From: Schmidtea nova
Taxonomy: Eukaryota
Length of the DNA stretch: 64,000 bases
Direction: 5' to 3'
NCBI GenBank assembly: GCA_044892505.1
Contig: CM097882.1
Coordinates: forward strand, 196,044,001-196,108,000
The position numbers and the translations under genes were made by a program. The first letter of the stretch is position 1, and each line of letters opens with the position of its first letter. The notes beneath the pieces were generated by a model, which saw only the letters and a list, made by a program, of their open reading frames with translations, had not been told where the DNA came from and ran no database searches. This document shows positions 1 to 27,400 of the stretch, piece after piece.

Positions 1-2445
1 TTATTTTATGAATAAAAACAAAGTAAAGAACTAATTTTTAATTAATATAAACAAAAACAAAACAAATTCATTTATTCAACAAAAAACAAAGAAAAAATTA
101 ATGGTGAAATTTCACAATACATAAGTATAAATACAAAAATAACTACAAAAATAACTAATTATTTTTATTAAAATAATATTTTAAAAATACCAATGCGTTA
201 ACAGTATCTGTGCCTAATCTATTGCGTACTTTATTAATAGAATTACTAGCAACTGAAAATACCCTCTCAGATGATGTTGATGTTGGGCTTATTGACAATA
301 GAGCTTCATATAAATTATTCATATTGCTACTTCTTTTGCCATCGTTTCCCTCAATAAATTTGAATTCTTTGTCAATATTAAAACTAGATTTATGATGTTT
401 TAATTTTGTTATAGATTCGATACTTTTTTGTAAATTGTAGTGTTCAGCTTCTATACGTTCATCATCCTCTATTTCAATTTCTGACTCTTCATCAATTTCA
501 CTTTGATTACTTCCCTCTTCTAAAAACAGCCTGTGAAACATTTGTTTTGCAAAATTCTTTGTAATAAATTTTGAAGAATAGTTTAAAAAATCATTTTCAT
601 TTTGATTTGGAAAAGTACCATGGTGTAAGAATAATAGTAATGATATTAATTCTTTATTTCTACGTTTTTCAATCTTCAATATTTCAAATAAATTCAGCGA
701 AAATTCTGTATTAATTTGCTTCAATCTTTGGAAAACGTATAACATTGTACCTTCTGCTGTCAATAAATTAGCACTGTCTTTACTCAGTTGTTCTACAGCT
801 AACATGGTTGGCTCAAGTGTAGTTGACACATTTTTTAAAACACTAACATAATCTTCATTAAAACATTGGAAACCAAGTTCATCTAATGCATTATTTATGC
901 AATTAATTAGTTTTAGGAATCTATTTATAGATTGAGCCAATGAGTTCCAACGTGTTGGTACATCTAATATCAATTTTAGTTCATGTACTTCTTGTTGTCG
1001 TACATGTTTTAATAAAATTTCTGTTCGTATTGATGAATTTCTGAAAAATTTAATCATTTTTCTCATTTCGTATAATGCTGGTTTAATATCTGAAATTAAG
1101 ACATGATTTTGTGAATCTTCTACAATTACTAAATTTTCGTCATCTTCTTGGTTCGTCTCCTTCGTCTCCACAGAAAAGCTCATCCTCATCATCTTTTTCA
1201 ACATTTGCAATATCATCTGAATTAATCTTTTTATATATAACTTTAAGTACAGCCAAATGTACAGCATGGTTATAACATAGCTGTTTCTCAGCGGTAATAA
1301 GTGAACAGTATTTTACCATCACGCTGGCACCATCATTTGTTGAAGCAACAATATCTTTCCTTAGACTTACACCAAATTCTCTCAAAATATTTTCCACCAA
1401 TTCTTTGGTTTTTTCAGCTGTACACTTTTCTGTGATTGTTACTAAGCCAAGAGCAAACTGTTGCAAATTCGATGACCGTAAATTAACATTCAAATATCTC
1501 CGTATTGAAACGTCTGTCCACTCATCAACGGAAATACTAAATTTCTTCTTCAAACTTAATAATTTCTGTAATTCGTTTTTTGTTTCAACTTTTTTTTCCT
1601 CAAAAAAATCTAATATATTCTTGCGAACTGTATTGCAGCTTCTCGGGATATTATAATGGCGGCTCGCAACATATCCTCTAATTGCATCAGAATGAACAAT
1701 GGCATTGAACGAAAATCCATCCTTGGCTGCGCATTTTGATAAAATTTCATTCAAACTTTCCTTTTTTATGAAATTCGTAATTAATGAATTAGATGACTTA
1801 TTTTGTTTAGATGTTGAAGCCTCAGAATTTAATTCATCAAAGTTGCTTGCATTAATAAAAATTCTGTGAAGTTTTAGATGGTTAATTAAACCAGTAGTAT
1901 TTTCCCCTTACAGCTTAGTCGTGCTCCGCAATCATAGCATTTAGCTTCGCCTTTATCTATTTTTTGAAAATGATTCCATGCTTCAGACTTTCGTTTGCTC
2001 ATTCTAGCAACGGGTAAATAAAACTAAAAAAATATATAACTTTCTGTAAAAAATAATTTATTTATTATTTATAGAAAAGAGCATACATAAAGTAAAATAA
2101 ATATAGTTTTAAATGAATTAAGATTTGACTAGTGAATTAAACCGATTTACATTTGACAACTGAAATCAATATAAATAAAAATCAGCTGATTTTAACTCAG
2201 TATTGCTTTTGCAATACTACCTAATATTGTCAACATTTCTTAAAATCCCTATAAGCAATAATACTCATTTTAGTTAAACTTTAAGTTTCGGAATTTTCAT
2301 ATAGTGATTTAGATATTTTTTTAAATAATTTAACCGAATTTTGAATCCCGGGTACTCAATTCGAATTACCCGGGTATTAAATTACCCGTGCAACTACCGA
2401 AAATGGCGGGTATTTGAGTACTCGGGTACTTGATTGCAAACCCTA
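1..2445 (-). mobile_element. Decayed hAT (Ac-like) DNA transposon; other end lies beyond the window start
   Basis: Minus-strand terminus TAGGGTTTGCAATC at 2445 with subterminal TACCCG/CGGGTA repeats, upstream of a transposase pseudogene. Confidence 0.8.
155..2002 (-). pseudogene. hAT transposase, frameshifted near ~1900 and ~1190
   Basis: BED finger (AWNHF..CYDC..LINHLKLH) from ATG 2002; SVDEWTD, TNDGASVM, CYNHAVHL and LDVPTRWNS motifs; C-terminal dimerisation domain SPTSTSSERVFS. Spread over three frames. Confidence 0.88.
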
Positions 2446-5478: not shown

Positions 5479-8129
5479 GAAGTAGATATACAGAGACATG
5501 GTGATCGTGGCAGACTTACGTCAGAAGAATTTGTGAATGTTTTTAAAGAAATTTCGACTCGTCCTGAGATTTTTTTTTTACTTATAAGGTATATAAATAT
5601 TTTTAAAAAATATTTTTAAAAATTACAATATGAAACATTACGTATTGTATAAAAATATTCATTTGTAATAAATGGCTAGTAAATAAACAAAATTGTTTAT
5701 GCGAAATATAGTAGGTAGATGTGTGGAGCCGGGAACAAAGACATTATGACTCATGCGTGGGCGGAAAAAAAAGAACAAAGACCCCCCCCCTCCCCCCCGG
5801 GGGGGGGGTAGAAATTTTTTTTTTGATGAGTCATCGATGAGTCATCGATGAGTCATCGATGAGTCATACTTTTTTTTTTTTTTGATGAGTCATCGATGAG
5901 TCATAATTTTTTTTTTTAAAAATTTTTTTCACGCCAAATTTTTTTTTTCAAAAATTTTTTTACGCGCCAAATTTTTTTTTTTCAAAAATTTTTTTCGCGC
6001 CAAATTTTTTTTTCAAAAATTTTTTTCGCGCCAAATTTTTTTTTTCAATAATTTTTTTTCGCGGCAAATTTTTTTTTCAAAAATTTTTTTTCGCACCAAA
6101 TTTTTTTTTTCAAAAATTTTTTTACAATTTTTTTTTTTCAAAAATTTTTTTTTTTTTTAGGCCAAAATTTTTTTATACTAATTTTTAAAGACGATTTTTT
6201 TTTTTTTTTAAGATAAATTATTTTTGGTTAAATTTTTTTTAAAAGACAAAATTCGAGTAATAAAAAATATTTACAACAGGTGTGCAAACAAAGACATTTT
6301 TATATGTGTGCATGTTTAATTAACTATTATTTGTCAAGTATGAAGCTTTTGCACTTCAAAACCATCACAGAAGAGGTTCTGCTTCCAGGGTTCTGATCGC
6401 AATGTTCTGCTTCCAGGGTTCTGATCGCAATGTTCTGCTTCCAGGGTTCTGATCGCAATGTTCTTCTTCCAGGGTTCTGATACTAAATGTTCTGCTACAT
6501 TTAATTATTATTTTTTCAAACTAAAGACATTGCAACACGTGTGCAAGTTAACAAAGACATTGCAATACACATGCAACATGAACAAAGACATTGCAACACA
6601 CGTGCAAGGACTTTGCAACACGCGTGCAACATGAACAAAGACATTGCAACACACATGCAAACTAAACAAAGACACATGTGTGCAACACATAAACAAAGAC
6701 ATTAAAAAAGACAAAATTTATTTATAAATATATCGTNNNNNNNNNNNNNNNNNNNNNNNNNNNNNNNNNNNNNNNNNNNNNNNNNNNNNNNNNNNNNNNN
6801 NNNNNNNNNNNNNNNNNNNNNNNNNNNNNNNNNNNNNNNNNNNNNNNNNNNNNNNNNNNNNNNNNNNNNNNNNNNNNNNNNNNNNNNNNTAATTACTTGT
6901 AANNNNNNNNNNNNNNNNNNNNNNNNNNNNNNNNNNNNNNNNNNNNNNNNNNNNNNNNNNNNNNNNNNNNNNNNNNNNNNNNNNNNNNNNNNNNNNNNNN
7001 NNNNNNNNNNNNNNNNNNNNNNNNNNNNNNNNNNNNNNNNNNNNNNNNNNNNNNNNNNNNNNNNNNNNNNNNNNNNNNNNNNNNNNNNNNNNNNNNNNNN
7101 NNNNNNNNNNNNNNNNNNNNNNNNNNNNNNNNNNNNNNNNNNNNNNNNNNNNNNNNNNNNNNNNNNNNNNNNNNNNNNNNNNNNNNNNNNNNNNNNNNNN
7201 NNNNNNNNNNNNNNNNNNNNNNNNNNNNNNNNNNNNNNNNNNNNNNNNNNNNNNNNNNNNNNNNNNNNNNNNNNNNNNNNNNNNNNNNNNNNNNNNNNNN
7301 NNNNNNNNNNNNNNNNNNNNNNNNNNNNNNNNNNNNNNNNNNNNNNNNNNNNNNNNNNNNNNNNNNNNNNNNNNNNNNNNNNNNNNNNNNNATAATATCA
7401 ACTTATAAAAAATAACTTATAAAAAGAACTTATAAAAAGAACTTATAAAAAAAGTAAAAATATTAACATATAAAAAAAAAATAAAAAAATAATAAAATAA
7501 TTCATTAGTTTTAATTGATTGCGCAATTTATTACAATCAAAATGTATTGGCCCTAAAGAGGACCATTATTTCGTTCACATTCTGTTTATTGGTTACTGAA
7601 TATTTTCATCATTTGTTTCTGTTTATTTTCCTCATTGGTTTTAGAATATTTTTTCATCATTTGTTTCGGATTATTTTTTCATCATTAGTTTCGGATTATT
7701 TTTTTCATCATTTTTTTTTTTTTTTTTTTTTTTCGGATTATTTTACATCATTTGTTTCGGATTATTTTTTCATTATTTGTTTCTGATTATTTTCATCAAC
7801 ATTTGTTTCTCTTTATTTTCATCAATTGTTTTGGATTATTTTCATCATTTGTTTCTGTAATCTTTTTTCTTCATCTGTAAGCTAAAATTTAGTAATATTT
7901 GTTTACAATCATAAATTGTGGCCCTGAAGAGGGCCGATTGTTCATTCACATATCTTTTTGGTTTTCTTTATATCTTTTTTTTTTTTTGAATTGTTCGGTT
8001 TAATCTTTTTTTTGATTTTTTATATTTCTTTTATATTTTTTGTCATTATCCTCATTGTCATCTTTATCCTCATCCGAAGTAGTCCCGAGCAGTCGGATCG
8101 TAGAAATCATAAGGGTCATCAGACGGACC

Positions 8130-8188
<59 letters not shown>

Positions 8189-11100
8189 CTGATCCATCAT
8201 CACCTACAAATATAGTGGTGTCACCCCCCAGATAGTGGCCATACGCCAAACTTTTATTTTTTTCCACCCAGTTCCTCTTATCGTCCCTACAAGATAAGGC
8301 TCTCTTATTGCTTTTTATACTAAAGAGCTGGTGATTTTTGCTCGTAATGCGGAACTGGGGGACATTATATATTTTATCGTTTAAAAAACAGTCAAGGTAA
8401 GACTGGTGTGTGAGACCTGCATCTTTCAAACAGATACCCTTGGCTTTCATGCAGGCCTCGTCTCCCATAAGACTATAGCACTTAGGTCTTAAGAAAACCC
8501 ACTCATCATACAGTAGACCCTTATTCTCATCCTTAAATTTGCCAATCACAGAATCAAGGGTCCTACTATACAATGCATGATGAGTGTCGTAATTAGAGGT
8601 ATCCAAAAGCCTATCGTCAATCATTGCGGTCAAAAGAGTGTTCAAGTCAAGATTTTTGATTTCCAAGAAGAAGGAATCAGTATCCCCAGCAACGATGTTA
8701 ATTTCGCAGTTGAAGTCGTTACGATATTTTTGTAACTCTTCATACTGCAGCTGGTACATACGAAGTTTGGATAAATCCAGTACGGTTTGTCCAATGTAAC
8801 TGGGTCTATCCAAACATACTGATTCCTTCTGAAGCAATACGGAGATGAGGTCATTGTCGATTTTTGTAGTTTTTTTGAAATTAGCTTTTGACGTGTAAGT
8901 CAGCAGTTTTTGTGCCGAGTTACACAGTCGTAAATTAATTCTTTTTTTTAAATTCTCTACGGTTTTGCCGTAGAGACTATTATTTAATAATTTATAAAAG
9001 TTCTTATCGAGCTTATTTGTAGATGCAGCTCGTAAGTCTGTGTTTATTTTTATATAATTATAAAAGATTTTATTTTGTGTAAATTTAATAGCGCGATGTA
9101 TGTGCGTTACCTTCACACCAATTTGAATAAATAGTTGCAGAAGCCGCCAATGAAGAACATAATTCTTCTTTGGAAGATGCGTTAGCAACAGCTTCTCAAC
9201 CTTGGATCCCGGTGCACACATCTTTTCAGCGGCAACTGGAAGATCATCCAGTTTGTCGTGAATCGATGCCGGAATTTCCAAATCCACTTCTATGGTGTAA
9301 CCATAATGAAGTGTATCGAGATTTTCCGATGTGCACTCACAAACGATGTTATTTAATAATTGGTCATCAGTGACCCACTCAAAATTACCACAAGGAAGGG
9401 GTTGGCTTAAGGCCCACCCATATAAATTATTTATGTCAATATATAGTAATGCGGTATCCGGGCTCGTCTTGACATAATGTTTATTGACAAACGTTAGTCC
9501 GCCGCGAATACCGCCCTCGAAAAAGTTATACATCTCCATATCGGTGAGGAGCTCGATAGGAGAGTCAAGAGTTAATAAAGCGGAACTCCACGACATGCCG
9601 GGAATTCCGAGAAAATTTAAAGGCTCAAGCCTGTTATGGTTAATTGATTTTAATCGAAATTGCTGAAAATAATCAGCTAACAAAAACACATCCAATTTTA
9701 GATAAACCATCATGTAATCGTACAGTGATGTACATGATGTTTCTTGCCATATTTTATGGGCAGCAGCATACTCGACAGCAGTTATATCTTTCCATTTCGG
9801 GGGTAAACACAAGGTTGATTTTAAAACTTCTAAAGAAGTGGCAGCGTCATAAGGAAAAATGCCCTTGGCAGTGACTATAGTGCCTCGAAATTCAGATTGT
9901 GTTAATGGTAAGCTAGTGAGTGTTTTTACTGCATTATTTAGAGACTCACTTACAAACTGATAAGAGTCAATAAATTTTACGGTCAGGCTATCGATGTACG
10001 CGAAAAGACTTAAAAACTTTTCACTAGTCAATGGAATACAACTAATATTCCAACTGTTATATTTGGAAAGACCATATTTTAAAATATGGTGTAAATCGTA
10101 ACCCTTCAAGTTGTGAAAGATTACGGGCAAAGAGTGTCGTATTTGCCGGGACTTGTTACATTCTGAGCAGGCTGCTCCAATATAAAGACCGGTGAAATGG
10201 TCGTGATCCCTAACAGGCGCAACTAAAAGTTTTTTGCATAAATAACAATTAGTGCTATTATCAAATTGTCGCTGTTGGGTCGCAGTGATAGTCATACGTT
10301 TTTGATAATTTTTATAATAATAGGGTGTCACTATATACCGACTGATTGACTCAATTTCTCTTAAGAATTGATCAACACCGTCTAACCCTACAAAAGATTT
10401 GTAAATTCTCACCCCAGAAAAGTTGTTAATGAGAAGGAGACCTGCGGCAATAGGAAGATGTTTTTGGTGGTGAACAGTGTCTTTCGGTAATATTGCCTCG
10501 AAATCTGCATATATTACGAAAGGAGGAGTTACTGTTTTCTTCCAATCAGTAAACTCCAAAAATTTATTTTTGGGTAAGGTGTACAGTGTAGTACCCAACT
10601 GATTTTTGTTACAAAGACCCTTATGACGATTAAAGGCTTCGTCATTCCTAAACCCATTCAAGCAACGAGGGCACCATTGACTACAAATCCTAACTGGGGT
10701 GATTGTGCTGTTTCGGCAATTCAAAAAGCGATTCAGATCGGTAATCGCAAGATAATGAAAATTATCTTTTTTCTCCAAAAGAAGCAAATTTATGGGAATA
10801 GCCCCGACTACTTTACTACGGTAGACTATATCGATAAAGGGATGTTTAAGAACGACATTATCATCATTGTCATTGTCGCTTACATCTATTTGGGCCTTTT
10901 CGTCATATGTAAGGACATTAATACTATAGCCACTGTTTTGTCTCTCAAATTTTTTGATGTTAACTAATTTCATGGGCATGTCGGTGGGGTCAAAAACAAG
11001 TTGGGAAAGATCATAAGAAGTAGTCCTATGCCTGTATTGGCGTTCAATACTATTATATTTAACTACTGCCAAGAAACTGTAAAGAAAGCAATAGGTGTCA

Positions 11101-11686
11101 TTATTTTGGACATTTACAAGGCAACTTAAATTTCTTAAAGTATTCGGCGTCTGGATATAACTGCTGCCGCTCAATCGACTAATTTCCGAAAATTTAGTGA
11201 CTAAAAAACTAATATATTCTATTTTAGAGATTGTCCAATTACTCCCCTTTTCGTTAATCTGGACAATCTTCTCATTTAAATTAGTGACACCTTCCTCAAT
11301 AAAGGTATCACTCCACTCTCTGGCAGAATTTGAGATGACGAAAGATTGTAATTGATCATCTTTCTCAAATTCTACCTTGAGACAAAATTGTATTTTAACT
11401 GATTTTAAATTAATAATATATGATTTTAATTTATCTACTAATATATCAGGTACAGAGACCGTTTTTAATAATAAGTTAGATACATCCATTTTTATAATAA
11501 AATGGGTATCGTTCAAGTCGGAAGTAACTTCAACAATACCCATTCCAATTTGATTATTATTATTATTTAAAATATTAACATAATCGTCAAATTCATCATC
11601 ATTGACGATTATGTCAGATATAATATTCATATTACTACTTTTATTATAAATAAGATCATCCTCATCATCACTGATGAGGGATATAA

Positions 11687-11753
<67 letters not shown>

Positions 11754-12097
11754 ATTAGAAATATTATTTTCATCTTCATCATCGCTGATGTCGATGATGA
11801 TCAGTTTTTTAGGAACTGAATCCGTTAATGTTGTATTTTTACGTTTATTATTTAGTTTTTGTAAAGTATTATTATTTTGTAGAATATTATTTTGTAGATT
11901 ATTATGATTAAGTGTATTATTTAGATTAAGTGTATTATTATTATTATTATTATTATTATTTGTATTTTGTAAATTATTTGTATTTTGTAAATTATTTGTA
12001 TTTTGGAAATTATTATTTATATTTGTATTATTTTGTAAAATATTTCTATTATTTGTATTTGGATTTTGTAAATTATTATTATTATTATTATTAATGG

Positions 12098-12148
<51 letters not shown>

Positions 12149-15100
12149 GGTTGTTATTAGTAATATAATTTTTATATAAAGAATTAAAAAGAGATTTTTT
12201 TGAAGGTTGGAATTGGGAAAGATGAGTCCTATGAGAAAGGTAAAATTCCTTATAAGATTTAACTTCAATAATTTTACATTTTGGGCAGAGGAGGTGGGTG
12301 ACACCATTATATTTATAGGTATAGTACTTTTCCATAATGACATGACAGTCATTATGGAAACGACTATTACAAAAATTGGTATATGTTAAACCTGAATATA
12401 TGGAAAAAATTAAAATATAATTTAAATAATAATTATAATAATTATAAAAAATAATATCATCATCAATATTCTTTTTATTATTATTAATATAAAATAATTC
12501 CTAATTAATATAAAAGTTTTCATCATTATTTCGTCATATTAGCCTTCTTTTTGGACATTAAACAAAAAAAAATATTATCATCTAAATCTGTCTTGTTTAT
12601 CTTGGTAATTTACCTTTTAACTTATTAAGTAATTGTTTTAAATATGTTACTTAATAAGTTAAAAGGTAAATTAATATAAAAATTAATATAAAAATAATAT
12701 AAAATTCAATATAAAATTCAATATAAAAATAATATAAAATTCAATATAAAATTCAATATCAAAATTCAATATCAAAATATTTTTCATTATAACGTTAATT
12801 ATTCATAAAAAATAAAATCTTCATCATTTCATATTATTATTGTTCATCATTATTTCTTCATCATTCTTTGTCATAATAATAATAATTCAGCTTCTTCATT
12901 TCGTCATAACAAATTCTGCATTTCATATAATTATTTCTTCATAATATTCTTGGTCATAATAATTCATCTTATTCATTTCATAATAACAAATTCAACATAA
13001 TATCCTTTTAACTTATTAAGTAATTGTTTTAAATATTTTACTTAATAAGTTAAAAGGTAAATTACTATAAAAATAATATAAAAATAATATAAAATTCAAT
13101 ATAAAAAAAAAAAAAAAATCAATATAAAATATTTTTTCATTATAACGTTAATTATTCATAAAAAATAAAATCTTCATTATTTCATATTATTGTTCATCAT
13201 TATTTCTTCATATTATTCTTTGTCATAATATTAATTCTTCTTCTTCTTTATTTCATCGTAACAAATTCTGCATTTCATATAATTATTTCTTATGTCACTT
13301 CATTTCATAATAACATCATAACAAATTAAACATAATAATTTCATTATTTTTAAAAGTTATTATTATTATATTAAAAGATTTAATTAAAAAATATTATTAT
13401 TATTATTATTATTATATAAATAAATAAGAATAAATTACATTTAGAGTTTTTAAAACTCTGTCCATTCAGTTTCATGGCATCATCGTTACTCGGGACATCA
13501 TTCATAATAATCGGTTCATTTAAAATCGTCTCATCGGCATCCATATCTACAGCATTCATATTTTCTAAAAAATAATTTAACAATAATGAAAATTAAAATA
13601 TTATTAATTTTACTGATAATTCTTTTCGTATTTCCAAGTCCACTTGAGGTTCCGGCCATATTGATCGATAAATTAACACCTAAAAAAAAAAAAGATTAAT
13701 ATAATTAAATAAAAAAATAATAATTTTACTGTTAAGGCCTCCCGCGATCCGCTTCGATTTATTAATATTTGATAAATTATTCATATTTAGAAAATTTCTT
13801 GAAAATTTTTGATAGATTTAAAATTTGAAAGTAAAAAGTGACGAAATAATTCAAGTATATACTATATAAAGGTGAATTTTATTAACCGACCAATCAGAAT
13901 CGAGATAGGATAGGCAAATACATGCACACATACTGCACACATAATATATCTTTGTTTATGTGTGTTTGACGTCACGATATTGCTTTGTATCGTGACAAAG
14001 ACATGACATGTGCTTATCACGCATTGATCACGCACTGGTCATGCCTTTGTGATGAAAATAATAATATTTATAATTAATAATAATAAAAATAATAATTAAT
14101 AAAAATAATAATTAATAAAAATAATAAAATAATAAAATACATTTATTGCTTTAAATAATCAACAACAGCAGACAAGCACCCTTTATAGGCACACATGCAA
14201 TGATCTTTATAGGGACATGAAATGTTTTCAGGAACATATTCAACATCTTTATAATTATATTTAATTAATCTTAATTTGGGGAAATACTTCTTCAAAACAT
14301 ACATCTTTTCATTATCGGTAACATAGAAAATAGCTCCTTTATCTGTAATATCATCCATTATACATTTTGGGCAAAAATAATCTTGTCCTTCAAACGATTC
14401 TATACGATCAGGCCATAAAGATAAATCACTGTATATATAATACTGAGGTGTGAAAATATTATTGACATTCATAATACATAATTCCTTAATTGTTGTTCCA
14501 CCCATTTCATTATATCCATAAAAATCGATAAAATAACAAGACATTTTTTCAAATAAAGTTTATTAAAATAAATTGTTTATAACATTGATTTCAACCATGC
14601 AAGGCAATGTTCACCACAAGTGATTGTTAAAGGATGCTGATACCGAATTCTATTATACACAATAGGTTTACCGATAGTTTGTAGTTTTCGAACAAGTAAA
14701 TTCGGATAATAATATCCAAAGGGATCAAATACATGTATTCGATCTGGTTTCACATAAACTGCAATCCAATGTTCACCGCCCAACGTAGATGTCTGAGTAT
14801 TTACAATGATGGCTTGATTCATTTTCAAATAAGGTATTTTATCGAGAGGAAATACTCCAATAAATTGATTTCCCAATAGTTTTTTACCTTGTTGTAATAC
14901 CTGAAAAGAACTATTTCAAAATAAATAACTAATCAATTAAAAATCTTACTCCATAATAATAATAATAAAAATAATAACTTTGATCATTTATACTGTTTAA
15001 GCTTTGCTCAAAATACAAATGTTTAAGCTCAAACCAATAATGTTTGAGCTCTGCTCAAACCAGTATTGTTCGATTGGCAGTAATTTGAACTTCATTTTCA

Positions 15101-18100
15101 AAAACTCCATAAATAACTACATGAACCGGTTCATCAATAGGTTTGGCAAACTTTATATCGAGTCGTAAATTTCCGTTTTGAGGGATTTGGCTTTGATTCA
15201 AATCAAAATCGGGAGCCAGAACAAATGTAAAGAATGGATAACTAGATTTAAATTCATCTAGACCAATACCACAATTCAAGTTTTTATCCAAATAACCTAG
15301 ATTTCGGACAAGACTTTGCATATATGATGCACTAAAATTATCATTTTCAAAATCCTGGGTATATGTTTCACGATAATCGGTATTTTTCGACAATGTTAAT
15401 GAAGTCACATTAAAATGTTTGAATGTTGATGTTGACTCGGTATAAGACCCATTATATTGATTTTCAGATTGAAAAGCCACAAGAATGAAATTAGGCATTC
15501 GTCTATCTCCAAATATTTGCTCCTTGTAAAATGACGATGCCCCTTTACCGATAGCAAACGATACGATTTCTTTAGATTTTAATGGATAAATTGCATGTTT
15601 TTTATTTAAACCAATTTGATGACCGGCCAATACTGAAGAATCACATCGAACTCTTCTTACCATTAATTTTGCATCAACTATTTGGATAACTGGTTTCCCA
15701 GCTGCAGATTTCAATGATAATGCAGAATCAGATCGCTTCAATCTAATATGTACATTAACTCCGGGAAGTAAGTATTTAGGTTGATCCATAAAATCCAGTT
15801 GTAATGACGAACACATGTTGAAAAGTTTAGATCCCTTTATCCATTTTTTCCGATCGTCGGCTGAACCATATCCCATTGGAGTAAGACACGTTTCTTTAGC
15901 ATCATTCGTATAATTTAAAATAGTTTCGATTATTGCCTTGTGTGCATATGTATTGTTTCCACCCTCGATTTTTATATTATTAAATCCGAGAATTACATCT
16001 TTGAAAAGTGTATGAAACAAATAATTATTGGGAACTACATCACTCACATCAGCTAGAGCTTTTTTATCTTTATCTACAACCTTGATTGTAACGGACAATA
16101 ATGTATCGTTCAAATCCAAATATTCGGTTTGAGAACCATTAATGTAAAATTCAACATCATTTCTACTATCTGTAATTGAATTCATTGGAAACACATCTTC
16201 AAACGCCCCATATTCAATAACTGCTTGAGGTGATGGTCGATCAAAAAGACATAATTCAGATTTACCGCAAATCATTCTTCAAATATAGTTCCATGACCTT
16301 TCATTCGTTTGTTTATACGTTTTCGTTTACGTCTTGGTCCTACCGGTACAGATTCCGGTTCCTTATTTTTTGTAAACATACTTGTAATTGTAGGAAGCAT
16401 TTGTGTTACAGCAGGTATAGCTTTATTAACTGCGGCCAAAGCATTGGTTTTCAATGACGGTAATATTTTATTATCTTTCATGAGAACGTCCTTGGCAGTA
16501 TTCATTCCGAAATTACCTAGTCGTCTAAGAATTGGAAGTGCAAATCTCCCAATAGTTTTCAACCAACCTGATCCGTACTGTTTACCGACAAAATACGGTA
16601 ATTCGCCACCAGTTTGGCTATCACTGTACATTGAAACTATATCGGGATTACTCATCGTTTTTTCGAAAATGTAGAGTTAAGTGAGTTTTTGAATCTTTTG
16701 GAAATTTTATAAATCTTCCACTGTCATCCCGGATATTTATTTCTATATTGTTTATACAAGATGTTGAAACAGGTAAATACATTGGATTTTCAACTTGTAT
16801 TTGAACAATTTCATCTGGCTCGTATTTTTCAATCCATACCGATTTTAGTAAAGGAACCAAGGAATCACCAACAATAATGGGTTCGATAATGTTTGTATAC
16901 ACGAATAATTGCTGATGAAGTTTAGATATTTTCGGTTGACGAACACCAGAAATGATATTTTTATCGGTAAATGTATCCTTATCTAATCCCAATGTATTGA
17001 CCAAGTATTTATCAAATCTGACTTTATTGATTTTTTCTTTGAGTTTGAATTTGAACAATTTATTTAATTCGACAACTGTAAAAATATCCGAACAATTATC
17101 GCTAATATATTTCTGTAATTCATCTAGATGCGTTATATACAACTCCTCCTTGAAGGTGAATACATGTCCTTCTTGACGATCATACGATATAGTAAAAGTA
17201 ATTATTTCTTCATCGTTACTGGCCAAGTTTTGCATAACTTTGAATTCACATTCTTCTTCATTACATTTTATTGTCAGTTTATTACTTCCCATTCGTTTTG
17301 CTACATCAAGATCGTTAAATGTAATTGTATAAGGAACAACATTACACGTGAGAATTATTTTTCCACTTCGTTGCCACATTTCGATATCCGGATCAATTGT
17401 GTGAGTTGGAACATTCAGATGACCACTATTATTATATATCGAGAAAAATGCATTTGCAACAATTGTTTTCGTAATATAGTAATATATTTTACAATAACTA
17501 TAAAATGGAAAAGGTTGGTAAACAAATGTAAAATCCATTAGAGCAACTTCCCAATTTCCGTTTAAATAAATTGGATTAGGTAAATTCACCATGAATTTAC
17601 TTGCGGTATTATCCGGATGGATATTCGGACAACTATTGCTCGGTAAAATAGTGTAAAAATTCACTTTACTAGATTTTTTGACGAGATCCATGATGGTTCT
17701 TTATATCCATGCCATTTAACATAGTATTGTTTATCCTTACCCACCATTTTAGTCTTCAAAATCTTTTGAATTCTAAATATCGTAGGTTTAGGAATAACTT
17801 GTAATTCTTGTTCGTAGAATTTGCCGCTGATTATATTGTTATCAGAGTCACGAATAGTATACATGACAGGATTCTGCACTGTGTTGACTTTCGATATTTG
17901 ATATACCTCATCACTCCAATTATTATCAAAATTTTTAACGAATGGCGATGTACTAATCTTGCTAATTCGAACATGATCATCAACTTTATATTTTGGTTTC
18001 TTTACTTTCACTTCACTCACAATATTTTCAGTATCAACTACTTCTGCCGGTTTCCTGCCATTTATACCCCGATGAGCACTATGATTATAACTATGAATCA

Positions 18101-21100
18101 ATTGAGGTAAGACATTAATCCAGGTTTTATTGCCTTTAAAAACAAAGTATTTTTTCAATCGATCACGCAAAGTTCGATTAAATCTCTCGACATGAGCGGC
18201 TTTGAATTGTGAGAATACCGAATAATGATTTATTCCCTTGATTACTTCCTTGACTTTACTGTTGTAAAATTCCTTTCCTAAAAAATATTAAATTTATAAA
18301 TTTAAATTAAAATTTACCCAAATCCGTTTGTAAATTAGTTGGCCGATCCTTTTTCATCATTGTCTTGATAGCAATTGCCATATCATTAGCAGATTTTGAT
18401 TTTACTCCAATTGCTCGAGCAAATCTACTGTAAACATCAATACACGTTAAAATATACTTGTACCCCTTGTTAATTTTGGAATACGGAATCATTTCCATCA
18501 AGTCCATTTGCCACAAATCATTGATTCTATATGTTTTATATGCTCGAGTTGGAAATCGTTTCAACATCGGCTTGTTTAGACTGTATGCAAGTTGCCCCGA
18601 TAACCAACTTTGTGTCTGTTGTTTCGACTTCTGTGCTTTTTTCCTTAGCTTTTCGACTCCACCGAAACCGGCGTCGTCTTTTGGGTTCGTCCAGATCTTC
18701 TCCATTGCAACAAGAAGATTTAAAGTTTAAATTTAAATTAGGTAATGATTGACCCATTGTTTATGACTTTCTTTTTCCCAATAAACCAGCACCTCCCAAT
18801 AAAGATAATGCTAATGGTAACAATGCTGCAATAAAACCACCTTGTTGTTTATATATTACTTTGCGCATAAGTTTTTTATTTTTTGAGTTTACTAGCGACA
18901 ACAATGGTTTTTTATGTTTGTTCAAAACACGGCGATTAGATGGAGTTAGATTTATTTTACCTCGCACGACTTTAATTAAAATAGAGAGTAAATCATCGAT
19001 GACGTAACTAGGAAACGATTGAAGAATACCCATTCTTCTAACGGAAGGGGCTTTAAGTAATGCATTAAAAAACGGTAAACTACGATGATGTGTTTGTTTA
19101 GCATTAGATTTCAAATTATTTTTGGGAATATTATCCATAAGTATTTTCTTGGATTTCTTTCTTGATTTCTTTATAGATTTCTTTGTAAATAGTTTCTTTG
19201 TTTTCTTTCCCGCTTTCTTTGTTCTAGCCTTTATCAATGGCTCAAACTTTACTCGAGATTTCATTAACATGATTACGATTGTAAACAGAATTAACTTTGT
19301 TTATAAACCATGGCTCCTTCAGGGTTAAAAATATCAGTTCTAACGCGTAAATCATCACTGCATTGTTGAGTAAAATCCAGGAAAATATATCCATGAGGAG
19401 ATTTTGTAGCATCTTGAAAGGCTTCAATCAAAAAGTTACGATTAGAAGGATAAGCTTGTCTTGCCAGAAAATCAATAACTGTTGCATCTCTAGGATTTTT
19501 AAAAACAACAAGATATTGAACATTTAAATTACGAGTTCGATGACTACCGCCCTGATGAAATAAATTCTGAGTTATAAAAATAACAGTAACACCTTTATGT
19601 CTACTGATTTTCGTAAATAAGTTATTGAAATCCTTTTCTTTATTTGCTTCTTGATACAAGTCGTCAATGATAATCACATCACCATGTTTTAATCTAGATG
19701 ACCAGTTTTTATCGAAACCTTTAATGATTGTCATTTTTATTTTACAAAACTGATCTTGTGTCATTCCACTTTCGTCGTCAGCTCCCCTATGCCAATAAAT
19801 ATTATTAAATTTTGACTTGAATAATTTCGATTGCAATAATTTACAAACAAATAAAGTTTTTCCACTCCCGCTCGGACCAACAATTTGAAACACTGCATCA
19901 TTTCTTAATTCCATATTTAAAACTTATATTTTGTTAATATTATTGTTTATATTTGTTTTAAATACCTGTTCTCAAAGTAATTATTTCATTTAAAAATATT
20001 TTCAGTAATGATTAGAAACATTAATTACAAAGGTAAGACAGATGTATCACACATGAAATTTCCAAATGGAAAACCCCAGCAAATTGTAGATCGAAGTGGG
20101 AAATACCCAATAATATACTTTAAATCAGGAAGATATAGAATAATGGGATGCAGAGAATTTATTAGTGACGAACAAGTTGAGTTTTACGATTTAAAGATAC
20201 AATCGATAACTGTAACTGCGGATTTAGGATTTATTTGTAATTTGAATGAATTATCGAAATTAATACCGTGTGTTTACGAGCCAGAATTATTTCCAGCTTT
20301 GAGATATATCAAATATAATCCCATGTGTGTAAATATATTTACAAGCGGGAAATTAGTCATATTAGGATTAAAAAACAAAGACTATAGTACTATAGTTGAT
20401 GATATTATTTACGATATAAAATCAATTATAGAAGATAAAGCCTTTGTTGATTTCATACTAACATGTGACTCATGACTGCAATATCGATGCATTAGAAATG
20501 CACGATTCTGATTGGCTCTGTGTGTATCGATAGAATAAAGACATGTTGTGCATGCTTCATTCTGATTGGTTCATTATGTGTGTTTCAAATCATGTGTGTT
20601 TCTTTGATATATATACTATGAACAATCTCACATAGTTTATATTCACAATTATGTCGATGACCCAAACTTTAATTAAAAGCCGTAAGGATTTTAATTTTTA
20701 ATTTTTCATATTTTATATTATTATTATTTTAGATAAATTAATGAACGTAATATATCGCAAATTGGAGGAGCTGTTCCCGAACCTGATGCCTGCTCTGGTC
20801 TACACGGCTCCTGAGATGTTCCCGTACAAGATTATGGTCTTGACGGGAATCGACATCAATCAGATTGTGCTCGATCATATGACGAGCCAGAATACGGATC
20901 TCCCAATGGTACCCGAGCACATTATGTGCGCTTATCAATGCGGGAGCTGCGTGGAAAGAATCCGGCAGTTTAATATCTGGGTTTTGAGGAATTCCCTCAA
21001 ACTCTATGATGTTCAACAAATGGACAAAATCGAGGAGGAGGAGCAGGAGGACCAAATCAAGGAAACATGGCCCAACTCAACTCCGGAGCCGACTGATGAA

Positions 21101-21245
21101 ACAACAACAACAACAACAGAATTGGAAGCACCAACTCTAGATGGTCCGTTTCCATCCGATGAATCCAATGATTGTATGGAATCGCCACAATCACCGGATT
21201 GTGCAGAATGCCATCGACAAGCTGATGGTGGTGATAATGAAGAAG

Positions 21246-21278
<33 letters not shown>

Positions 21279-24200
21279 AAGAAAACGCAGAACAATGATT
21301 TGATGTGTGTTTAATGTATTTAGTTTTTTTTTCATTTAGTTTTTAGTTTTGTAATTTTAGTTTTGTCATTTTAGCTTAATACAAGTTTATTATTCATTTT
21401 AGTTTTCATTTATTTAAATATTAATAGTTTATCTTTTATTAAATCATTTTTTTTTTTTATTTTTTTTTTTTAATAGTAGTAGTAGTAGTAGTAGTATTTT
21501 ATTAACTGTATATAAAAAAAGTAAATAGTTTTTATTAAATAATAATTAGTAAGAAATTGTTTTATGTAAGATAATTATAATTATAATAATAATAATAATT
21601 ACGAAATAAACAAATAAGTAAATACATTAGTAGCAGAACATTGCGAACAGAACCCTGGACGTAGAACTTATTCTGTGATTGTTTTTATATGAAAAAGCTT
21701 CATAATAAATAATTAAAACATGCATGCATACAACAAAGACATTGCAATACATGTGCATACTGTGTGCAAAACAAATGCATGAATACGATTGGACAAAGAC
21801 ATCCAGTCATCAGTATAAATACAAAGACATTTTATAAAATATTGTCACTATTTACAACATGCAATCACGAAAACAAAATTTGGATATAAGCGAAGAAAAA
21901 ATATATCAGACTGAGGTAAAACCAGTTCAGATGTACTATGACAGCCGACTTTATTTTTTGGTTAATGAAATACCGTATCGATTATCATATCCGGTAAAGT
22001 TAACAAAATCTTTATATGATAGTCTTGCTGTAATTATTGCCAAGGAAGATATTATCGCATTAAATCGAATATTTTCAAAGATGAATGTTAATTTGACATG
22101 TAAAGAAACAATGTACATCAATAACAGAAAAACTCGGTTTCATGATGCTTTTCAAACTATTGATTTCATGGATCAAGAACACTGGTTCGTTACAGTTATT
22201 ATTCAAGGGTACAAGATTGATAAAAAAGATGTTGTTACTCCGATTTGGAGAGTTGACAATGCAAGATACGCATAATTGTTTTTTAATAAATATTTTAGTA
22301 TGAACAAATTTAGTTTTTATATTAGTTTTTGTTTTTAAAATGAAATTAATTATAGTTATTTTATTATTATTATGTGTTGACAATACTGAAGGAGAACAAG
22401 CTTTGGAGGATTGTCAATCATCCCATCCGTTTCGAAAACAAGATAGTACTTGCGCGAGTTATAACGATATATGTCTTTACTCAAACATTGAATGCAATCA
22501 AATAAAATTACAATGTAATCAATGTCCTTCCAAAAATAATGTGATTAATAAAGATATTGAAAAAATGATTGACAAAATAATGATGAAAATAGTTGAACGA
22601 TTAAAATGTATAAATCAAACTATTGTTAAAAAAGAATATGAAGTCAGATATCAAAATCAAACAGTTGAAAACGAAAAAACATCAATTGTTTTACATTATA
22701 TAAGTTTATTTATATTAATAATTATACTGATGTTATCGGCATCCATACGGCTGGAGAAGATTTCAAATATTCCAAAGAATAATATTCCGACAAATACTAG
22801 TATTCCGATGAATAATATTACAATGAATAATATTCCGATGAATAATATTCCGAGTAACAATTCAGATGTAAATAATTTTGAAACTAAATTTTGTACACGT
22901 ACACAACGATATATTTATAAATAAATTTTGTCTTTTTTAATGTCTTTGTTTATGTGTTGCACGCATGTGTCTTTGTTTAGTTTGCATGTGTGTTGCAATG
23001 TCTTTGTTCATGTTGCACGCGTGTTGCAAAGTCCTTGCACGTGTGTTGCAATGTCTTTGTTCATGTTGCATGTGTATTGCAATGTCTTTGTTAACTTGCA
23101 CACGTGTTGCAATGTCTTTAGTTTGAAAAAATAATAATTAAATGTAGCAGAACATTTAGTATCAGAACCCTGGAAGAAGAACATTGCGATCAGAACCCTG
23201 GAAGCAGAACATTGCGATCAGAACCCTGGAAGCAGAACATTGCGATCAGAACCCTGGAAGAAGAACATTGCGATCAGAACCCTGGAAGCAGAACATTGCG
23301 ATCAGAACCCTGGAAGCAGAACATTGCGATCAGAACCCTGGAAGCAGAACCTCTTCTGTGATGGTTTTGAAGTGCAAAAGCTTCATACTTGACAAATAAT
23401 AGTTAATTAAACATGCACACATATAAAAATGTCTTTGTTTGCACACCTGTTGTAAATATTTTTTATTACTCGAATTTTGTCTTTTAAAAAAAATTTAACC
23501 AAAAATAATTTATCTTAAAAAAAAAAAAAAATCGTCTTTAAAAATTAGTATAAAAAAATTTTGGCCTAAAAAAAAAAAAAATTTTTGAAAAAAAAAAATT
23601 GTAAAAAAATTTTTGAAAAAAAAAATTTGGTGCGAAAAAAAATTTTTGAAAAAAAAATTTGCCGCGAAAAAAAATTATTGAAAAAAAAAATTTGGCGCGA
23701 AAAAAATTTTTGAAAAAAAAATTTGGCGCGAAAAAAATTTTTGAAAAAAAAAAATTTGGCGCGAAAAAAAATTTTTGAAAAAAAAAATTTGGCGTGAAAA
23801 AAATTTTTAAAAAAAAAAATTATGACTCATCGATGACTCATCGATGACTCATCAAAAAAAAAAAAAAGTATGACTCATCGATGACTCATCGATGACTCAT
23901 CGATGACTCATCGATGACTCATCAAAAAAAAAAATTTTTCTACCCCCTCCCCCCGGGGGGAGGGGGGGGTCTTTGTTCTTTTTTTTCCGCCCACGCATGA
24001 GTCATAATGTCTTTGTTCCCGGCTCCACACATCTACCTACTAAATATAATAAATCAATAAATTTCATATTAATAATTGTATGATTATAGATCACGAACAT
24101 TTTTTGGTTGTTAGGTACACGATATTTTAGCATAGCCTTTATACACAGTTGATACATTAAAATTAAAAAAATTGATCTATAGTCATACAATGCTTATTGT

Positions 24201-24361: not shown

Positions 24362-24437
<76 letters not shown>

Positions 24438-27400
24438 TGGGCACACATTAAATATATTAACCCTAAAGATAGGTAATGAACAAAAAACGTTAAATATATA
24501 TACTTAGTTAACAATTTTAAGTAATTTAACTTCATTAATTCATGAATTTTTCATTATAAAATTAAAGAAATACCAACATGAAGTCGTTTTATAAAAGTAA
24601 TTGAGAAAGTTTTTAAGTATATGAGTAGCTAGAAGGGTGCTCTTTGGCTCAAGACGGAATGACTCATCGATAAGGCAACGAGTCATTATGTTGATTCATA
24701 CATCTGATAGAAGGTGAGTCAGGCTACAAGATTATGGGTCATAAATTTTGTATGACTTATGGTCTTTGTTCTATAAAGCGCAAAAATGGTCCTGTCAAAA
24801 ATATCGATGACTCATCATTTTTATAACAAAGAACTTTTCAAAAAATCTTTATCTTTTTAGTTCCCCATGAAATCTTTTAATTTTTCAGAAATCGAATTAA
24901 AAAGTTTCTTTGTATGAGTCATGTATTTAGTATGACTTATCATTTTTCGAAAATCTTTTGAAGTCCGTTTAACAAAGACCTTTTTTCAAAATTTTTCTAT
25001 GTTGAAACAAATTCATGACTCATACAAAGAAAACTTTTATTCGATTTTTGGAAGAATTCAAAAATTTCACGGTGGGGGCACTAAAAAATTTTTTTTGAAA
25101 AGTTCTTTTTTTATAAAAATGATGAGTCATCCATATTATTACCACTTTTACACTTTATAGAACAAAGATCATGAGTCATACGGTCGGCTATGACGCATCA
25201 TCTTATAGCCTGACTCACCTTCGTCGATGAGTCATTTCGTCTTTAGCCAAAGAGCACTCTTCTCACTACTTATATGAATTTTGTTGGGCCGCATTAAAAG
25301 CCGTCCTGGGCCGCGGGATGGACACGCTTGTTTTAAATGATCTTATCAGTTGTTTAATTTGTATTATTTTGCAATGTCTTTTTACGAACTCACACATTTT
25401 AAAAGTTAAGAACTAGTTTCATATTATAAATACCAACGGAATGAGATAAAGTAAAAAACGAATTTTGTTTGTCGTATAATTTTATTAAATAACAATAAAA
25501 AAATTTCATCGATATAAATAATTTTGACACTTAAATTGTTGGATTGCGGAACCTTCTGTAATGTGGATACGGAATTATTCAGTGTTTCAGCAATAGTAAT
25601 TCACTATTGAAATATCTTATGAAAAATATGTACTAAAAAATTTAACGAAAAAATTCTATCAGTGGCACACTTTTTTATAAATTGTTCCGCAGGTTGAGTG
25701 TTAATGTAAAATACAGTATGAATTAAATATTATACTATTAATTTAATTAATGTTTATATTTATTTATTATAGAATCAGGCGCATGTATCTAAACTAGCAT
25801 AGCTCAGCCAATTACACCCTCTTTTAAAATATGCAATAAAACTGTCATGTATATTTATATGGTAACATTTTCGTACTATTTTATGTCTTTAAGTCAGTTT
25901 TTATATGGTCTTAAAAATCAATTGGAAGCAAATATGAAATTGAGTGCTTTGGAAATAGATTTTATCTTATTGTAGTTTAATTAGTTAAGCCCTCTAAATT
26001 TAGTGTTTTTTATTTTATATATTTATAAGTAACATGCAGCGGCGTATTTACCTGTATGCAGATTAGGCATTTGCCTAGGGCCTCGGATTTATAAGGGCCT
26101 CCAAAATACAAAAAAAAATTATAATTTTTTTTTTAAAAAAAAACAATAGTCGTAGCATTTTACATTTTAAACTTTAACAGTTTTAAAATTTTCAGAGTTT
26201 AAAACCTTTTGGGGCCTCAATTTCAATTTACAAAATAAAATTAGTAGGCCTTTACAAAATAAAATATATGATATACAAAATATTGCTTGGATGTTGCTTT
26301 TTTCCTTTTTGAATATGTTCAAATTCTTTTACTTATAAGAATTTATAAGAAAAAATAACAAATAGGATAAAAGCAACATCCAAGCAAGGTTTGAATTTTT
26401 ATATTTTGAATATAATATATTTTATTTTGTAAAGGCCTACTAATTTTATTTTATAAATTGAATTTGAGGCCCCAAAAGGTTTTAAACTCTGAAAATTTTT
26501 AAACTGTTAAAGCTTAAAATGTAAACTCTGAAAAATTAAAAAGAAAAATAATAAAATTATTTTTAAAAAAAAAACAATAGTCGTATCATTTCATATGCAA
26601 TTTCATTTCATTTATTGTTTGAATTTTGTTACGTTAACATCAAATTTTCGTTGCATGATTTTGAATATTGCAAATAAATATTTGTACGTATTGATTATTA
26701 GCATAATTTTGATTTTAGATTGATATTTTCCGAATAACCAACAGTTTTTTTTAAAACTACCAAAACCAATCGTTGTTGCTTCTTGCTTTCGTCATTTAAT
26801 ATTTCATAATTCACTCGACAATTATTCCATTTTATTTTTTTAAAAAAATATTGACAATTATACGTTAAAATGAAAAGAACTTTCGAGTCTGGCGCACAAA
26901 AACGATTGCGAAAAAAAATTCAATTGAAGGAAAACGAAAAGCAAAGAAACTCCCTTGCTAAATTTATGTCTTTGGATAAAAATGTTCCATCTACCAGTAC
27001 TGCGGCTGCAGATAAAACTGTTTCACTACCAGTAATAGCTGATAGCGATGTTAATCTTTCGATAAACAGTCTTTGTGCAGAAGTAGGTGCAAGTGATAAT
27101 TGCGTTGCCACTACCAATGACATTGAGGTTGAAATTGAGAGTGAAGTAGTAAGTACAAATACTTATCCTATCTTTACTGACATTGGTTTATGGCCAAAAA
27201 TAATTACTAATGATGTGATTAAACATTGTATCTGTATAAAACCCAAAAATGTGGGAGATTTAGAGTCTTCTAAAAAATGTTATAAAGATAACAATGATCA
27301 ACAAATATACCGAAAATTAAATGATGTACATTTTTATACGACTAAAATAAACGGAGTCCAAGAGCTAAGAGAATGGTTGATTTATTCTGAAACAACGAAA

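Follow-up and report, generated by a model that had tools for sequence, protein, structure and literature searches.

A stretch of 64,000 nucleotides from Schmidtea nova (GenBank assembly GCA_044892505.1, contig CM097882.1, forward-strand positions 196,044,001 to 196,108,000; all of it referred to below as the window, and numbered from its first letter) contains, at 5710-24041, one insertion of a Maverick/Polinton, a virus-like transposon of about 18 kb. The element looks recently integrated and coding-competent. Mavericks/Polintons are thought to be viruses that are able to live as transposons, and to our knowledge hardly anything is known of their activation. The explanation that best accounts for the whole, and which we hold with slightly better than even confidence, is that this element brings its own TATA-binding protein (TBP), uses two types of promoter, ties its DNA polymerase message to S phase through a histone-type hairpin, and recruits host factors to its terminal inverted repeats (TIRs). 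An element-specific transcription apparatus with a tie to S phase is plausible on the sequence features set out here, and three of these are new at the sequence level: the ATAAACAA motif, the two-strand layout and the polymerase hairpin.

In this scheme, the element would use host RNA polymerase II (Pol II) and supply a compact TATA-binding protein of its own; since it carries no RNA polymerase subunit gene, a host polymerase must be used. One promoter type would consist of a host-style CCAAT box, ACAAAG motifs and a TATA box before three accessory genes. The other would be a minimal (T)ATAAACAA 34-100 nt before the genes for the ATPase, the integrase, the capsid and their neighbours, with the small TBP of the element (mini-TBP) as the natural candidate for its reader. 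The polymerase mRNA would end at a histone-type hairpin; its synthesis, stability and translation would then follow those of replication-dependent histone mRNAs and fall in S phase. Through its TIR arrays, the element would attract host factors to either end; there the arrays could serve transcription as enhancers, assist end-primed replication or integration, or do both. A stricter version, in which a private two-tier programme has the helix-stripped TBP reading ATAAACAA while the polymerase message hijacks the histone hairpin pathway for S-phase-licensed replication, we consider doubtful.

The two ends of the element coincide with those given in an initial annotation of this DNA and are marked by the following features.

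5704-5709, no strand: left target-site duplication AAATAT, identical to the hexamer at 24042-24047
5710-6736, plus strand: left TIR, running into the assembly gap
6737-7391, no strand: assembly gap, with N runs at 6737-6889 and 6903-7391 and a 13-nt island at 6890-6902
22906-24041, minus strand: right TIR, with the same arrays as the left
24042-24047, no strand: right target-site duplication AAATAT, the same hexamer as the left

The AAATAT hexamer lies directly outside both arms, and both arms therefore belong to one insertion; its 6 bp correspond to the typical target-site duplication of Mavericks/Polintons, which ranges from 5 to 8 bp (PMC10748475). The left arm measures 1027 nt and the right arm 1136 nt, and they differ in the copy number of their 11-nt and 28-nt units, in a C/G run and in 2 substitutions, and in nothing else. 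The agreement between the two arms extends to the edge of the gap, at 6736 on the left and 22906 on the right, and the left arm presumably ends inside the gap. A mirror copy of the 13-nt island was sought in the right arm and in the rest of the element and none was found, indicating that the mirror symmetry of the TIRs ends inside the first N run. No reading frame abuts the gap on either side, the sequence at 7392-7500 being an AT-rich tandem repeat, and none of the assignments made here requires a frame to continue across it; a 227-residue "ORF" (open reading frame) at 6718-7401 was rejected as an artefact of translating N.

Within these bounds lie the genes that define the family.

8070-12335, minus strand: protein-primed family B DNA polymerase, 1421 aa, a single uninterrupted ORF
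14577-14954, minus strand: adenovirus-type cysteine protease (PF00770, 3.3e-6), with a short 5' exon as a candidate
15055-16275, minus strand: major capsid protein, double jelly-roll, 406 aa, recognised from its relatives and fold
17661-18705, minus strand: integrase, with an rve core and a C-terminal chromodomain, searched as two separate pieces
19291-19914, minus strand: A32/FtsK-type packaging ATPase, 207 aa (PF04665, 6.7e-7)
19915-20007, no strand: divergent spacer of 93 nt, containing the ATPase gene's ATAAACAA and, directly ahead of the TBP ATG, TTTTCAG

The polymerase gives a PF03175 match of 2e-27 on residues 701-1421 when its C-terminal 721 residues are searched alone, whereas the full-length Pfam search returns only a weak EndoVII match (PF02945, 1.8e-4); an HNH/EndoVII-like insert occupies residues 681-729, and the Exo and Pol motifs are visible in the translation. 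The two integrase pieces match PF00665 (2.3e-8) and PF00385 (4.7e-5), respectively. Searches with the capsid protein yield at least 147 relatives, which measure about 405-420 aa and are 39-84% identical to it, most of them spanning 100% of the query, and its AlphaFold2 (AF2) model (pLDDT 89) matches the iridovirus, PBCV-1, mavirus and Sputnik capsids in Foldseek with E values of 1e-15 to 1e-11. The element thus combines a protein-primed family B polymerase, an rve integrase and long TIRs with a 6-bp duplication, and, as its virion module, a double-jelly-roll capsid, a packaging ATPase and a maturation protease. The core genes contain no stop codons and no unambiguous frameshifts, and their ORFs are open and full length compared with relatives; the integrase frame is interrupted once and the main protease ORF is without a start codon, and both cases resemble short introns. 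The two gene modules run outward to the element ends from the 93-nt spacer, with the left side hidden by the gap. Long runs of Asn occur within the first 250 residues of the polymerase, and a run of 20 Gln near its C-terminus; they are encoded by AAT and CAA repeats (TAT/ATT and TTG units in Tandem Repeats Finder).

The first gene of the plus-strand module encodes the small TBP.

20008-20475, plus strand: mini-TBP, 155 aa, first repeat of beta-strands only, second repeat complete

The assignment is based on a match to the Pfam TBP family (PF00352, 1.2e-13) and to solved structures, of which an archaeal TBP is the best relative (1.6e-17) and eukaryotic TBPs also match. The protein has 33 close relatives of about 104-225 aa, most of them 144-174 aa, and a profile made from 28 relatives recovers 57 representative clusters at E <= 1e-30, nearly all of 100-230 aa; as judged by this profile, mini-TBP is a member of a family of at least 57 clusters. 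One relative of mini-TBP and one of the capsid protein both list an ENA contig of 12,578 bp, a hint that the two genes may occur together. In its AF2 model (pLDDT 90.6) the first repeat is without helices, and all 44 of the PDB fold matches at E <= 0.001 are TBPs, aligned over about 170 columns with a TM-score of 0.6-0.69. Both repeats of the TBP saddle were recovered, the second by sequence and the degenerate first by the fold and by a profile self-comparison, in which the N-terminal half matches the C-terminal half (hhalign, E 6e-6). F18, F38, F95 and F111, taken as the two phenylalanine pairs with which a TBP kinks TATA DNA, and an EPE-LF stirrup are invariant in the 28 relatives; F95 and F111 align with phenylalanines of the archaeal TBP, and the stirrup residues presumably contact TFIIB. 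By its model, mini-TBP should bind and bend TATA DNA. The helices of cellular TBPs face regulators.

Virus-encoded TBPs that fold like mini-TBP are found in giant viruses (phycodna-, mimi-, marseille-, asfar-, irido- and ascoviruses). They are the best viral fold matches of mini-TBP, with E values of 1e-6 to 1e-3, and all are longer; those at E <= 0.001 have 189-515 aa and all come from viruses with their own RNA polymerase. A parallel that retains the host polymerase is offered by beta- and gammaherpesviruses, in which BcRF1 of Epstein-Barr virus, ORF24 of Kaposi's sarcoma-associated herpesvirus and UL87 of human cytomegalovirus are TBP mimics that read a minimal TATT-type late promoter and recruit host Pol II. 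The likeness consists of a virus-coded TBP-like factor, a short TATA variant before virion genes and the use of host polymerase. There is, however, no sequence relation, BcRF1 being a weak fold match (rank 48, E 0.07), and the herpesvirus mimics are large and act with five other viral factors, which are not seen in the element.

The motif that mini-TBP may read is distributed over the minus-strand block as follows.

12593-19950, minus strand: copies of ATAAACAA, with 5' bases at 19950, 19304, 18852, 18764, 17734, 16755, 16316, 14580, 13959 and 12600

ATAAACAA, usually preceded by T, thus occurs in 10 minus-strand copies within 12336-19960 and not once on the plus strand, against about 1 expected (Poisson 1.7e-7). 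Seven of the nine minus-strand starts tested have a copy upstream, at 34, 36, 36, 41, 43, 59 and 100 nt, a pattern equalled in 0 of 20,000 random placements. These copies could instead be 3'-end signals, (T/C/G)ATAAA polyadenylation variants in a packed and possibly polycistronic block, rather than promoter elements. The minus-strand genes are indeed tightly packed, with overlaps, and most copies lie in or just past the last codons of the upstream gene. This alternative nevertheless appears unlikely. The ATPase gene, which is the first of the block, carries ATAAACAA with no gene upstream of it, which favours the promoter reading; a polyadenylation hexamer leaves three further fixed bases, CAA, unexplained; and most start codons are without a splice-acceptor-like AG just upstream. 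An operon with trans-splicing for the packed minus-strand genes was rejected as the main explanation because acceptor-like AGs are absent upstream of most starts. TTTTCAG stands just before the ATG of the TBP gene only.

The second type of promoter-like arrangement precedes three accessory genes.

13380-13784 (outer bounds), minus strand: small candidate three-exon gene with two candidate introns
13860-14045, minus strand: promoter-like region upstream of the small gene, with ACAAAG-type motifs, CTGATTGG and TATATAG
20490-20650, plus strand: promoter-like region upstream of the acidic gene, with two copies of CTGATTGG and TATATATAC
20651-21298, plus strand: acidic Cys-containing gene, with a candidate short 5' exon, a candidate intron at 20682-20732 and a main ORF of 185 aa
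21630-21858, plus strand: promoter-like region upstream of orf138, with one 28-nt TIR unit, three copies of ACAAAGAC, GATTGG and TATAAATA
21859-22275, plus strand: orf138, 138 aa, no family match

The CCAAT/ACAAAG/TATA layout thus stands before three genes on both strands, complete in two cases and partial in one. The initial annotation had described several internal promoters that share ACAAAG, ATTGG and TATA motifs; this holds in full for orf138 and for the small minus-strand gene, with ACAAAGAC, (CT)GATTGG and TATA, and in part for the acidic gene, whose upstream region has the TATA and carries AATAAAGAC instead of ACAAAG. All four copies of CTGATTGG in the window are inside the element, and three of them lie in sense orientation upstream of a gene. 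In the region upstream of the TBP gene, a scan found none of the shared CCAAT/ACAAAG motifs. The ATAAACAA copies described above support the presence of promoter-like motifs that belong to the element itself.

The tie to S phase is suggested by what lies downstream of the polymerase gene.

7547-7564, minus strand: another histone-type hairpin, the weaker of the two, whose 6-bp stem includes one G-U pair, loop CTTT, Histone3 score 17.5 bits
7586-7878, no strand: tandem repeats of about 25 nt between the hairpins, with no open frame on either strand
7917-7936, minus strand: histone-type 3' hairpin, stem GGCCCT/AGGGCC, loop CTTC, followed by ACA

The hairpin at 7917-7936 is on the sense strand, about 135 nt past the polymerase stop codon. 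Like the 3' hairpin of replication-dependent histone mRNAs (RF00032), it has a stem of 6 bp that encloses a loop of 4 nt and is followed by ACA; unlike that hairpin, it stands after a gene for a DNA polymerase instead of a histone, behind a 3' untranslated region of about 135 nt. It is identical to the C. elegans histone hairpin (PMC1924863) at 19 of 20 positions. With the remaining one, the fourth loop base, left free, the C. elegans pattern has an exact match here where 0 is expected; this base also varies among the hairpins of C. elegans. The first loop base is C, as in the nematode type. The second hairpin lies about 370 nt beyond the first, and the pattern search found only these two in the 64 kb; their fold z-scores are -2.7 (7917-7936) and -3.2 (7547-7564). 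The polymerase hairpin, which the initial annotation did not contain, is a plausible, independent sequence clue for a link of the element to proliferation. Over the whole window, Rfam searched at its gathering thresholds gave no match, and a tRNA search found none.

The TIRs are built mainly of short tandem arrays, which mirror each other at the two ends.

5710-5810, left arm: tip, with AAGAC and ATGACTCAT and the C/G run
5825-5904, left arm: 11-nt TGAGTCA array
5905-6151, left arm: 32-nt array with TTTCGCGCCAAA
6375-6496, left arm: 28-nt array
6523-6700, left arm: 31-nt AACAAAGAC array, the inner end beyond it being TATAAATA-like
22942-23119, right arm: 31-nt array
23146-23350, right arm: 28-nt array
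23574-23821, right arm: 32-nt array
23822-23923, right arm: 11-nt array

Each arm holds 6-8 copies of the 11-nt TGAGTCA unit, about 7-8 copies of a 32-33-nt unit, of which 2-3 contain the perfect palindrome TTTCGCGCCAAA and the others one-base variants, and about 5 copies of the 31-nt AACAAAGAC unit. The 28-nt unit, which was missing from the initial annotation, has 4 copies on the left and 7 on the right. TGAGTCA occurs 33 times in the window against 5.9 expected, a number reached in 0 of 100 shuffles; TTTSGCGC, from the 32-nt unit, occurs 12 times against 1.3 expected; and AACAAAGAC occurs 21 times against 0.9 expected. All five full TTTCGCGCCAAA palindromes are inside the TIRs, and the unit lengths of the arrays are near one or three helical turns. 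The motifs equal the textbook cores of AP-1/GCN4, E2F and SOX/TCF sites. The 31-nt unit also contains E-box-like and C/EBP-like strings and the 28-nt unit paired AGAACA half-sites, so that matching to consensus sequences is permissive and the sites are candidates. Near the tips (5785-5810 and 23945-23970), a C run with one T is followed by a G run; the two could form a GC hairpin, and their lengths differ by arm.

It is possible, if short of probable in our judgement, that the TIR motifs are mainly cis-elements for DNA transactions, serving as sites for the integrase, for protein-primed replication or for host helpers, and are not transcription switches. In adenoviruses, host NFI and Oct-1 assist initiation at the inverted terminal repeats. 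The arrays of the element are symmetric and lie at its extreme ends. Furthermore, a neighbouring palindromic element of 647 bp (24624-25270) has no ORF, is flanked by TATATG (24618-24623 and 25271-25276), and is probably a non-autonomous derivative of a related Maverick. Its tips begin with AGTAG like those of the Maverick, and it carries 7 copies of ATGAGTCAT as well as AACAAAGA(C) motifs. It shares the tip, and its AAGAC and ATGACTCAT pair is equally far from the end; because an element without genes keeps these, a cis role of the ends in integration or replication is indicated. The E2F-type palindromes are, however, absent from the 647-bp element, and the 28-nt unit recurs together with several copies of ACAAAGAC upstream of orf138, which fits a role in transcription. 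The cis role and the transcription role do not exclude each other, and the favoured explanation leaves room for both.

A more sceptical interpretation is that the insertion is a silent genomic fossil in the making, its hairpin a chance structure or a captured host fragment and its arrays expanded satellites that regulate nothing. Silencing is the usual fate of transposons in animal genomes, the array copy numbers differ between the arms, as would be expected if they slip easily, and the hairpin is below the Rfam gathering score. Against this stand the near-identical TIRs, the intact target duplication and core ORFs that are open and full length; the hairpin itself matches a 20-nt pattern with 0 expected, on the sense strand and just after a gene end, and the motifs are ordered in orientation and spacing. 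This interpretation seems rather improbable.

Several points weigh against the favoured explanation. The promoters, introns and 3' ends of the element are all read from sequence alone, and the host counterparts E2F, AP-1 and SLBP are assumed. The identification of F18 and F38 with the phenylalanine pair of the first TBP repeat is our own interpretation of alignment and model. No close ATAAACAA accompanies the genes for the polymerase and the protease; as a variant, (T)ATAAA can also serve as a polyadenylation signal, and several copies reach into or adjoin the preceding stop codon. The TBP gene itself has no clear promoter. The score of the polymerase hairpin against RF00032 (Histone3), 31.5 bits with an E value of 1.3e-5, is below the gathering score of 34, and an AATCC element, as found behind C. 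elegans histone hairpins, was sought close behind the hairpin and not seen. The gap, lastly, may hide a gene or a different inner TIR.

The initial annotation fared well in its parts. It had described an endogenous virus-like element with virion genes, and the polymerase, integrase, ATPase, protease and capsid have all been identified. Its TBP-like gene has the Pfam match, the TBP fold and the conserved phenylalanines described above, its acidic Cys-containing ORF has an isoelectric point (pI) of 4.1 and 6 cysteines, and its spliced genes correspond to five frame-compatible candidate introns in four genes. TIRs made of E2F-, AP-1- and HMG-box-type arrays are likewise present as consensus matches, phased and far above chance.

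The order of events that it derived from these parts is another matter. In that cascade, host E2F and AP-1 bound to the TIRs would start a plus-strand early unit, whose TBP-like and acidic products would then start the minus-strand genes. The abundance of the E2F- and AP-1-type arrays, the position of the TBP gene in the plus-strand module and the different promoter-like motifs of the plus-strand accessory and minus-strand virion genes would all fit. The layout, however, does not support the proposed order. The arrays were said to switch on the right-hand module, but each end carries a mirror copy of the same arrays, and on the right they stand downstream of the plus-strand genes, orf194 ending within that arm; they therefore do not single out that module. 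Nor do the strands divide by promoter layout, as the TBP gene is without the shared layout and the same layout precedes the minus-strand gene at about 13.8 kb. A search of the internal promoter-like regions found no E2F or TGAGTCA sites, all E2F-type sites being in the TIRs, and the acidic ORF is without LxCxE and had no relatives in the search described below. The cascade thus appears quite unlikely, and the link to injury drawn with it would follow from the AP-1 consensus only.

The cascade had been likened to the early/late logic of adenoviruses, in which the E2 early promoter contains E2F sites and the inverted terminal repeats contain sites for host factors. The element shares with adenoviruses a linear genome with inverted ends, a protein-primed polymerase, the protease family and motifs for host cell-cycle factors. 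It differs in having no E1A-like Rb-binding protein, and its E2F-type sites are in the TIRs and not before the replication genes. An early protein with both LxCxE and CxxC was not found: orf138 has one strict LxCxE, which is accompanied neither by a CxxC pair nor by a following casein-kinase site; with about 0.4 such motifs estimated to arise by chance, it is not significant and serves as a lead at most. The TBP mimic of herpesvirus late genes is a closer parallel than adenovirus.

The remaining ORFs and intervals of the element are the following.

12336-13379, no strand: AT-rich spacer upstream of the polymerase gene, with two direct copies
14143-14544, minus strand: ORF of 133 aa (orf133) with 8 Cys, no family match
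16272-16655, minus strand: ORF of 127 aa (orf127), basic with pI 10.3, no family match
16648-17691, minus strand: ORF of 347 aa, putative minor capsid protein (penton), assigned by position only
18761-19270, minus strand: ORF of 169 aa (basic169), pI 11.8, 26% K+R, Pfam matches below threshold only (E 0.04 and 0.23)
22340-22924, plus strand: orf194, 194 aa, ending 18 nt inside the right TIR

The very basic 169-residue protein is possibly a core or DNA-condensing protein. The putative penton protein gave no match in Pfam or in sequence searches of the PDB, and a Pfam search of the acidic ORF, orf138, orf194, orf127 and orf133 gave none either. Ten proteins of the window were also looked up by exact sequence in the protein collection, and none had an entry. 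As far as its topology can be read by eye, orf194 begins much like a signal peptide, is rich in Cys in its middle part and has a single hydrophobic span towards the C-terminus. The acidic ORF contains 24% D+E and two CxxC motifs among its six cysteines; a word search with residues 1-110, covering proteins of 0.55-1.75 times its length that share 5-residue words, found no relatives. Its GC content (20741-21298) is 0.45, compared with 0.25-0.37 in all other genes of the element, and this, along with the lack of relatives in that search, suggests a recent capture or a fast-evolving cargo. In the AT-rich spacer, the direct copies (12605-13330) are about 350-390 nt apart, and each consists of a palindrome of about 60 nt (97% alike) followed by 12-nt tandem repeats; they may represent a small insertion nested in the spacer or, alternatively, a structural element of the Maverick itself.

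The five candidate introns are 39-51 nt long, have the form GTAA[AG]...AG and are 85-95% AT; the integrase gene holds one of 40 nt, the protease gene one of 39 nt, the acidic gene one of 51 nt and the small gene two, of 50 and 49 nt. A strict scan for GTAAG...TTTNAG returned two candidates only, and the looser pattern has a background of 4 matches in 7.1 kb of open ORF. As the pattern alone is not rare, the case for introns is their compatibility with the reading frame, which on these sequence signals holds for five out of five.

Among described Mavericks/Polintons, those of nematodes offer the nearest comparison. The nematode pPolB2-class Polintons (PMC10748475) and nematode Mavericks (bioRxiv 10.1101/2022.07.12.499685) are of the same size class and have long TIRs, a 6-bp duplication and the same gene set. 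The pPolB2-class Polintons also share with the element the HNH-type insert in the polymerase, which has been reported for pPolB2 polymerases of terrestrial nematodes and oomycetes (PMC10748475). The element differs from the nematode Mavericks/Polintons in having a TBP gene and no large fusogen gene, and whereas the nematode core genes are described as intronless, core genes of the element contain candidate introns. The two papers (PMC10748475; bioRxiv 10.1101/2022.07.12.499685) do not mention TATA, TBP or promoters. Three features of the element look nematode-like: candidate introns of 39-51 nt, C as the first base of the hairpin loop, and an HNH-bearing polymerase. The gene module of the element is also that of adintoviruses and other midsize linear dsDNA (MELD) viruses (Starrett et al. 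2021, PMC8502044). Accessory "Oncoid" proteins with paired CxxC motifs are described there, and in the literature covered, a TBP of such viruses appears a single time, as a label in a figure legend of that paper. The acidic ORF compares with the Oncoid proteins in having paired CxxC and differs in having no LxCxE.

Other features lie in the window around the element. Remnants of hAT-type transposases flank it, with a hAT dimerisation domain and DUF659 at 155-1754 (minus strand) and DUF4371 at 26870-28324 (plus strand). A perfect (TA)35 microsatellite lies between the Maverick and the 647-bp element (24365-24435), and a foldback at 26185-26499 has 99-nt arms that are 96% complementary and 117 nt apart. 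At 42211-46484 (plus strand) lies the pol region of a long terminal repeat (LTR) retrotransposon, with aspartic protease, reverse transcriptase and RNase H; its frame is divided among several ORFs, and its GC and AT skews are both strongly positive. A stretch richer in GC (0.38) at 54718-56837 (plus strand) holds three ORFs of 149-186 aa, which have no Pfam match and may be another repeat family. Further assembly gaps outside the element are at 31921-32340, 33391-33618, 51266-51440 and 57778-58007; ORFs across 31.8-32.6 kb and 33.3-33.7 kb were rejected as N artefacts.

The mini-TBP family, the strand-specific motif and the polymerase hairpin are three features that can be checked against transcript and chromatin data. 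Should they fail, the element would still be a well-preserved reference Maverick of an AT-rich genome. If the stricter version of the proposal is true, this would be the first mobile element to use the replication-dependent 3'-end pathway of histone mRNAs, and its mini-TBP would be the smallest known TBP with a working saddle. If the features hold, they would indicate that a working TBP can do without helices in its first repeat, and they would explain a restriction of the element to dividing cells, for example those of the germline or the embryo.

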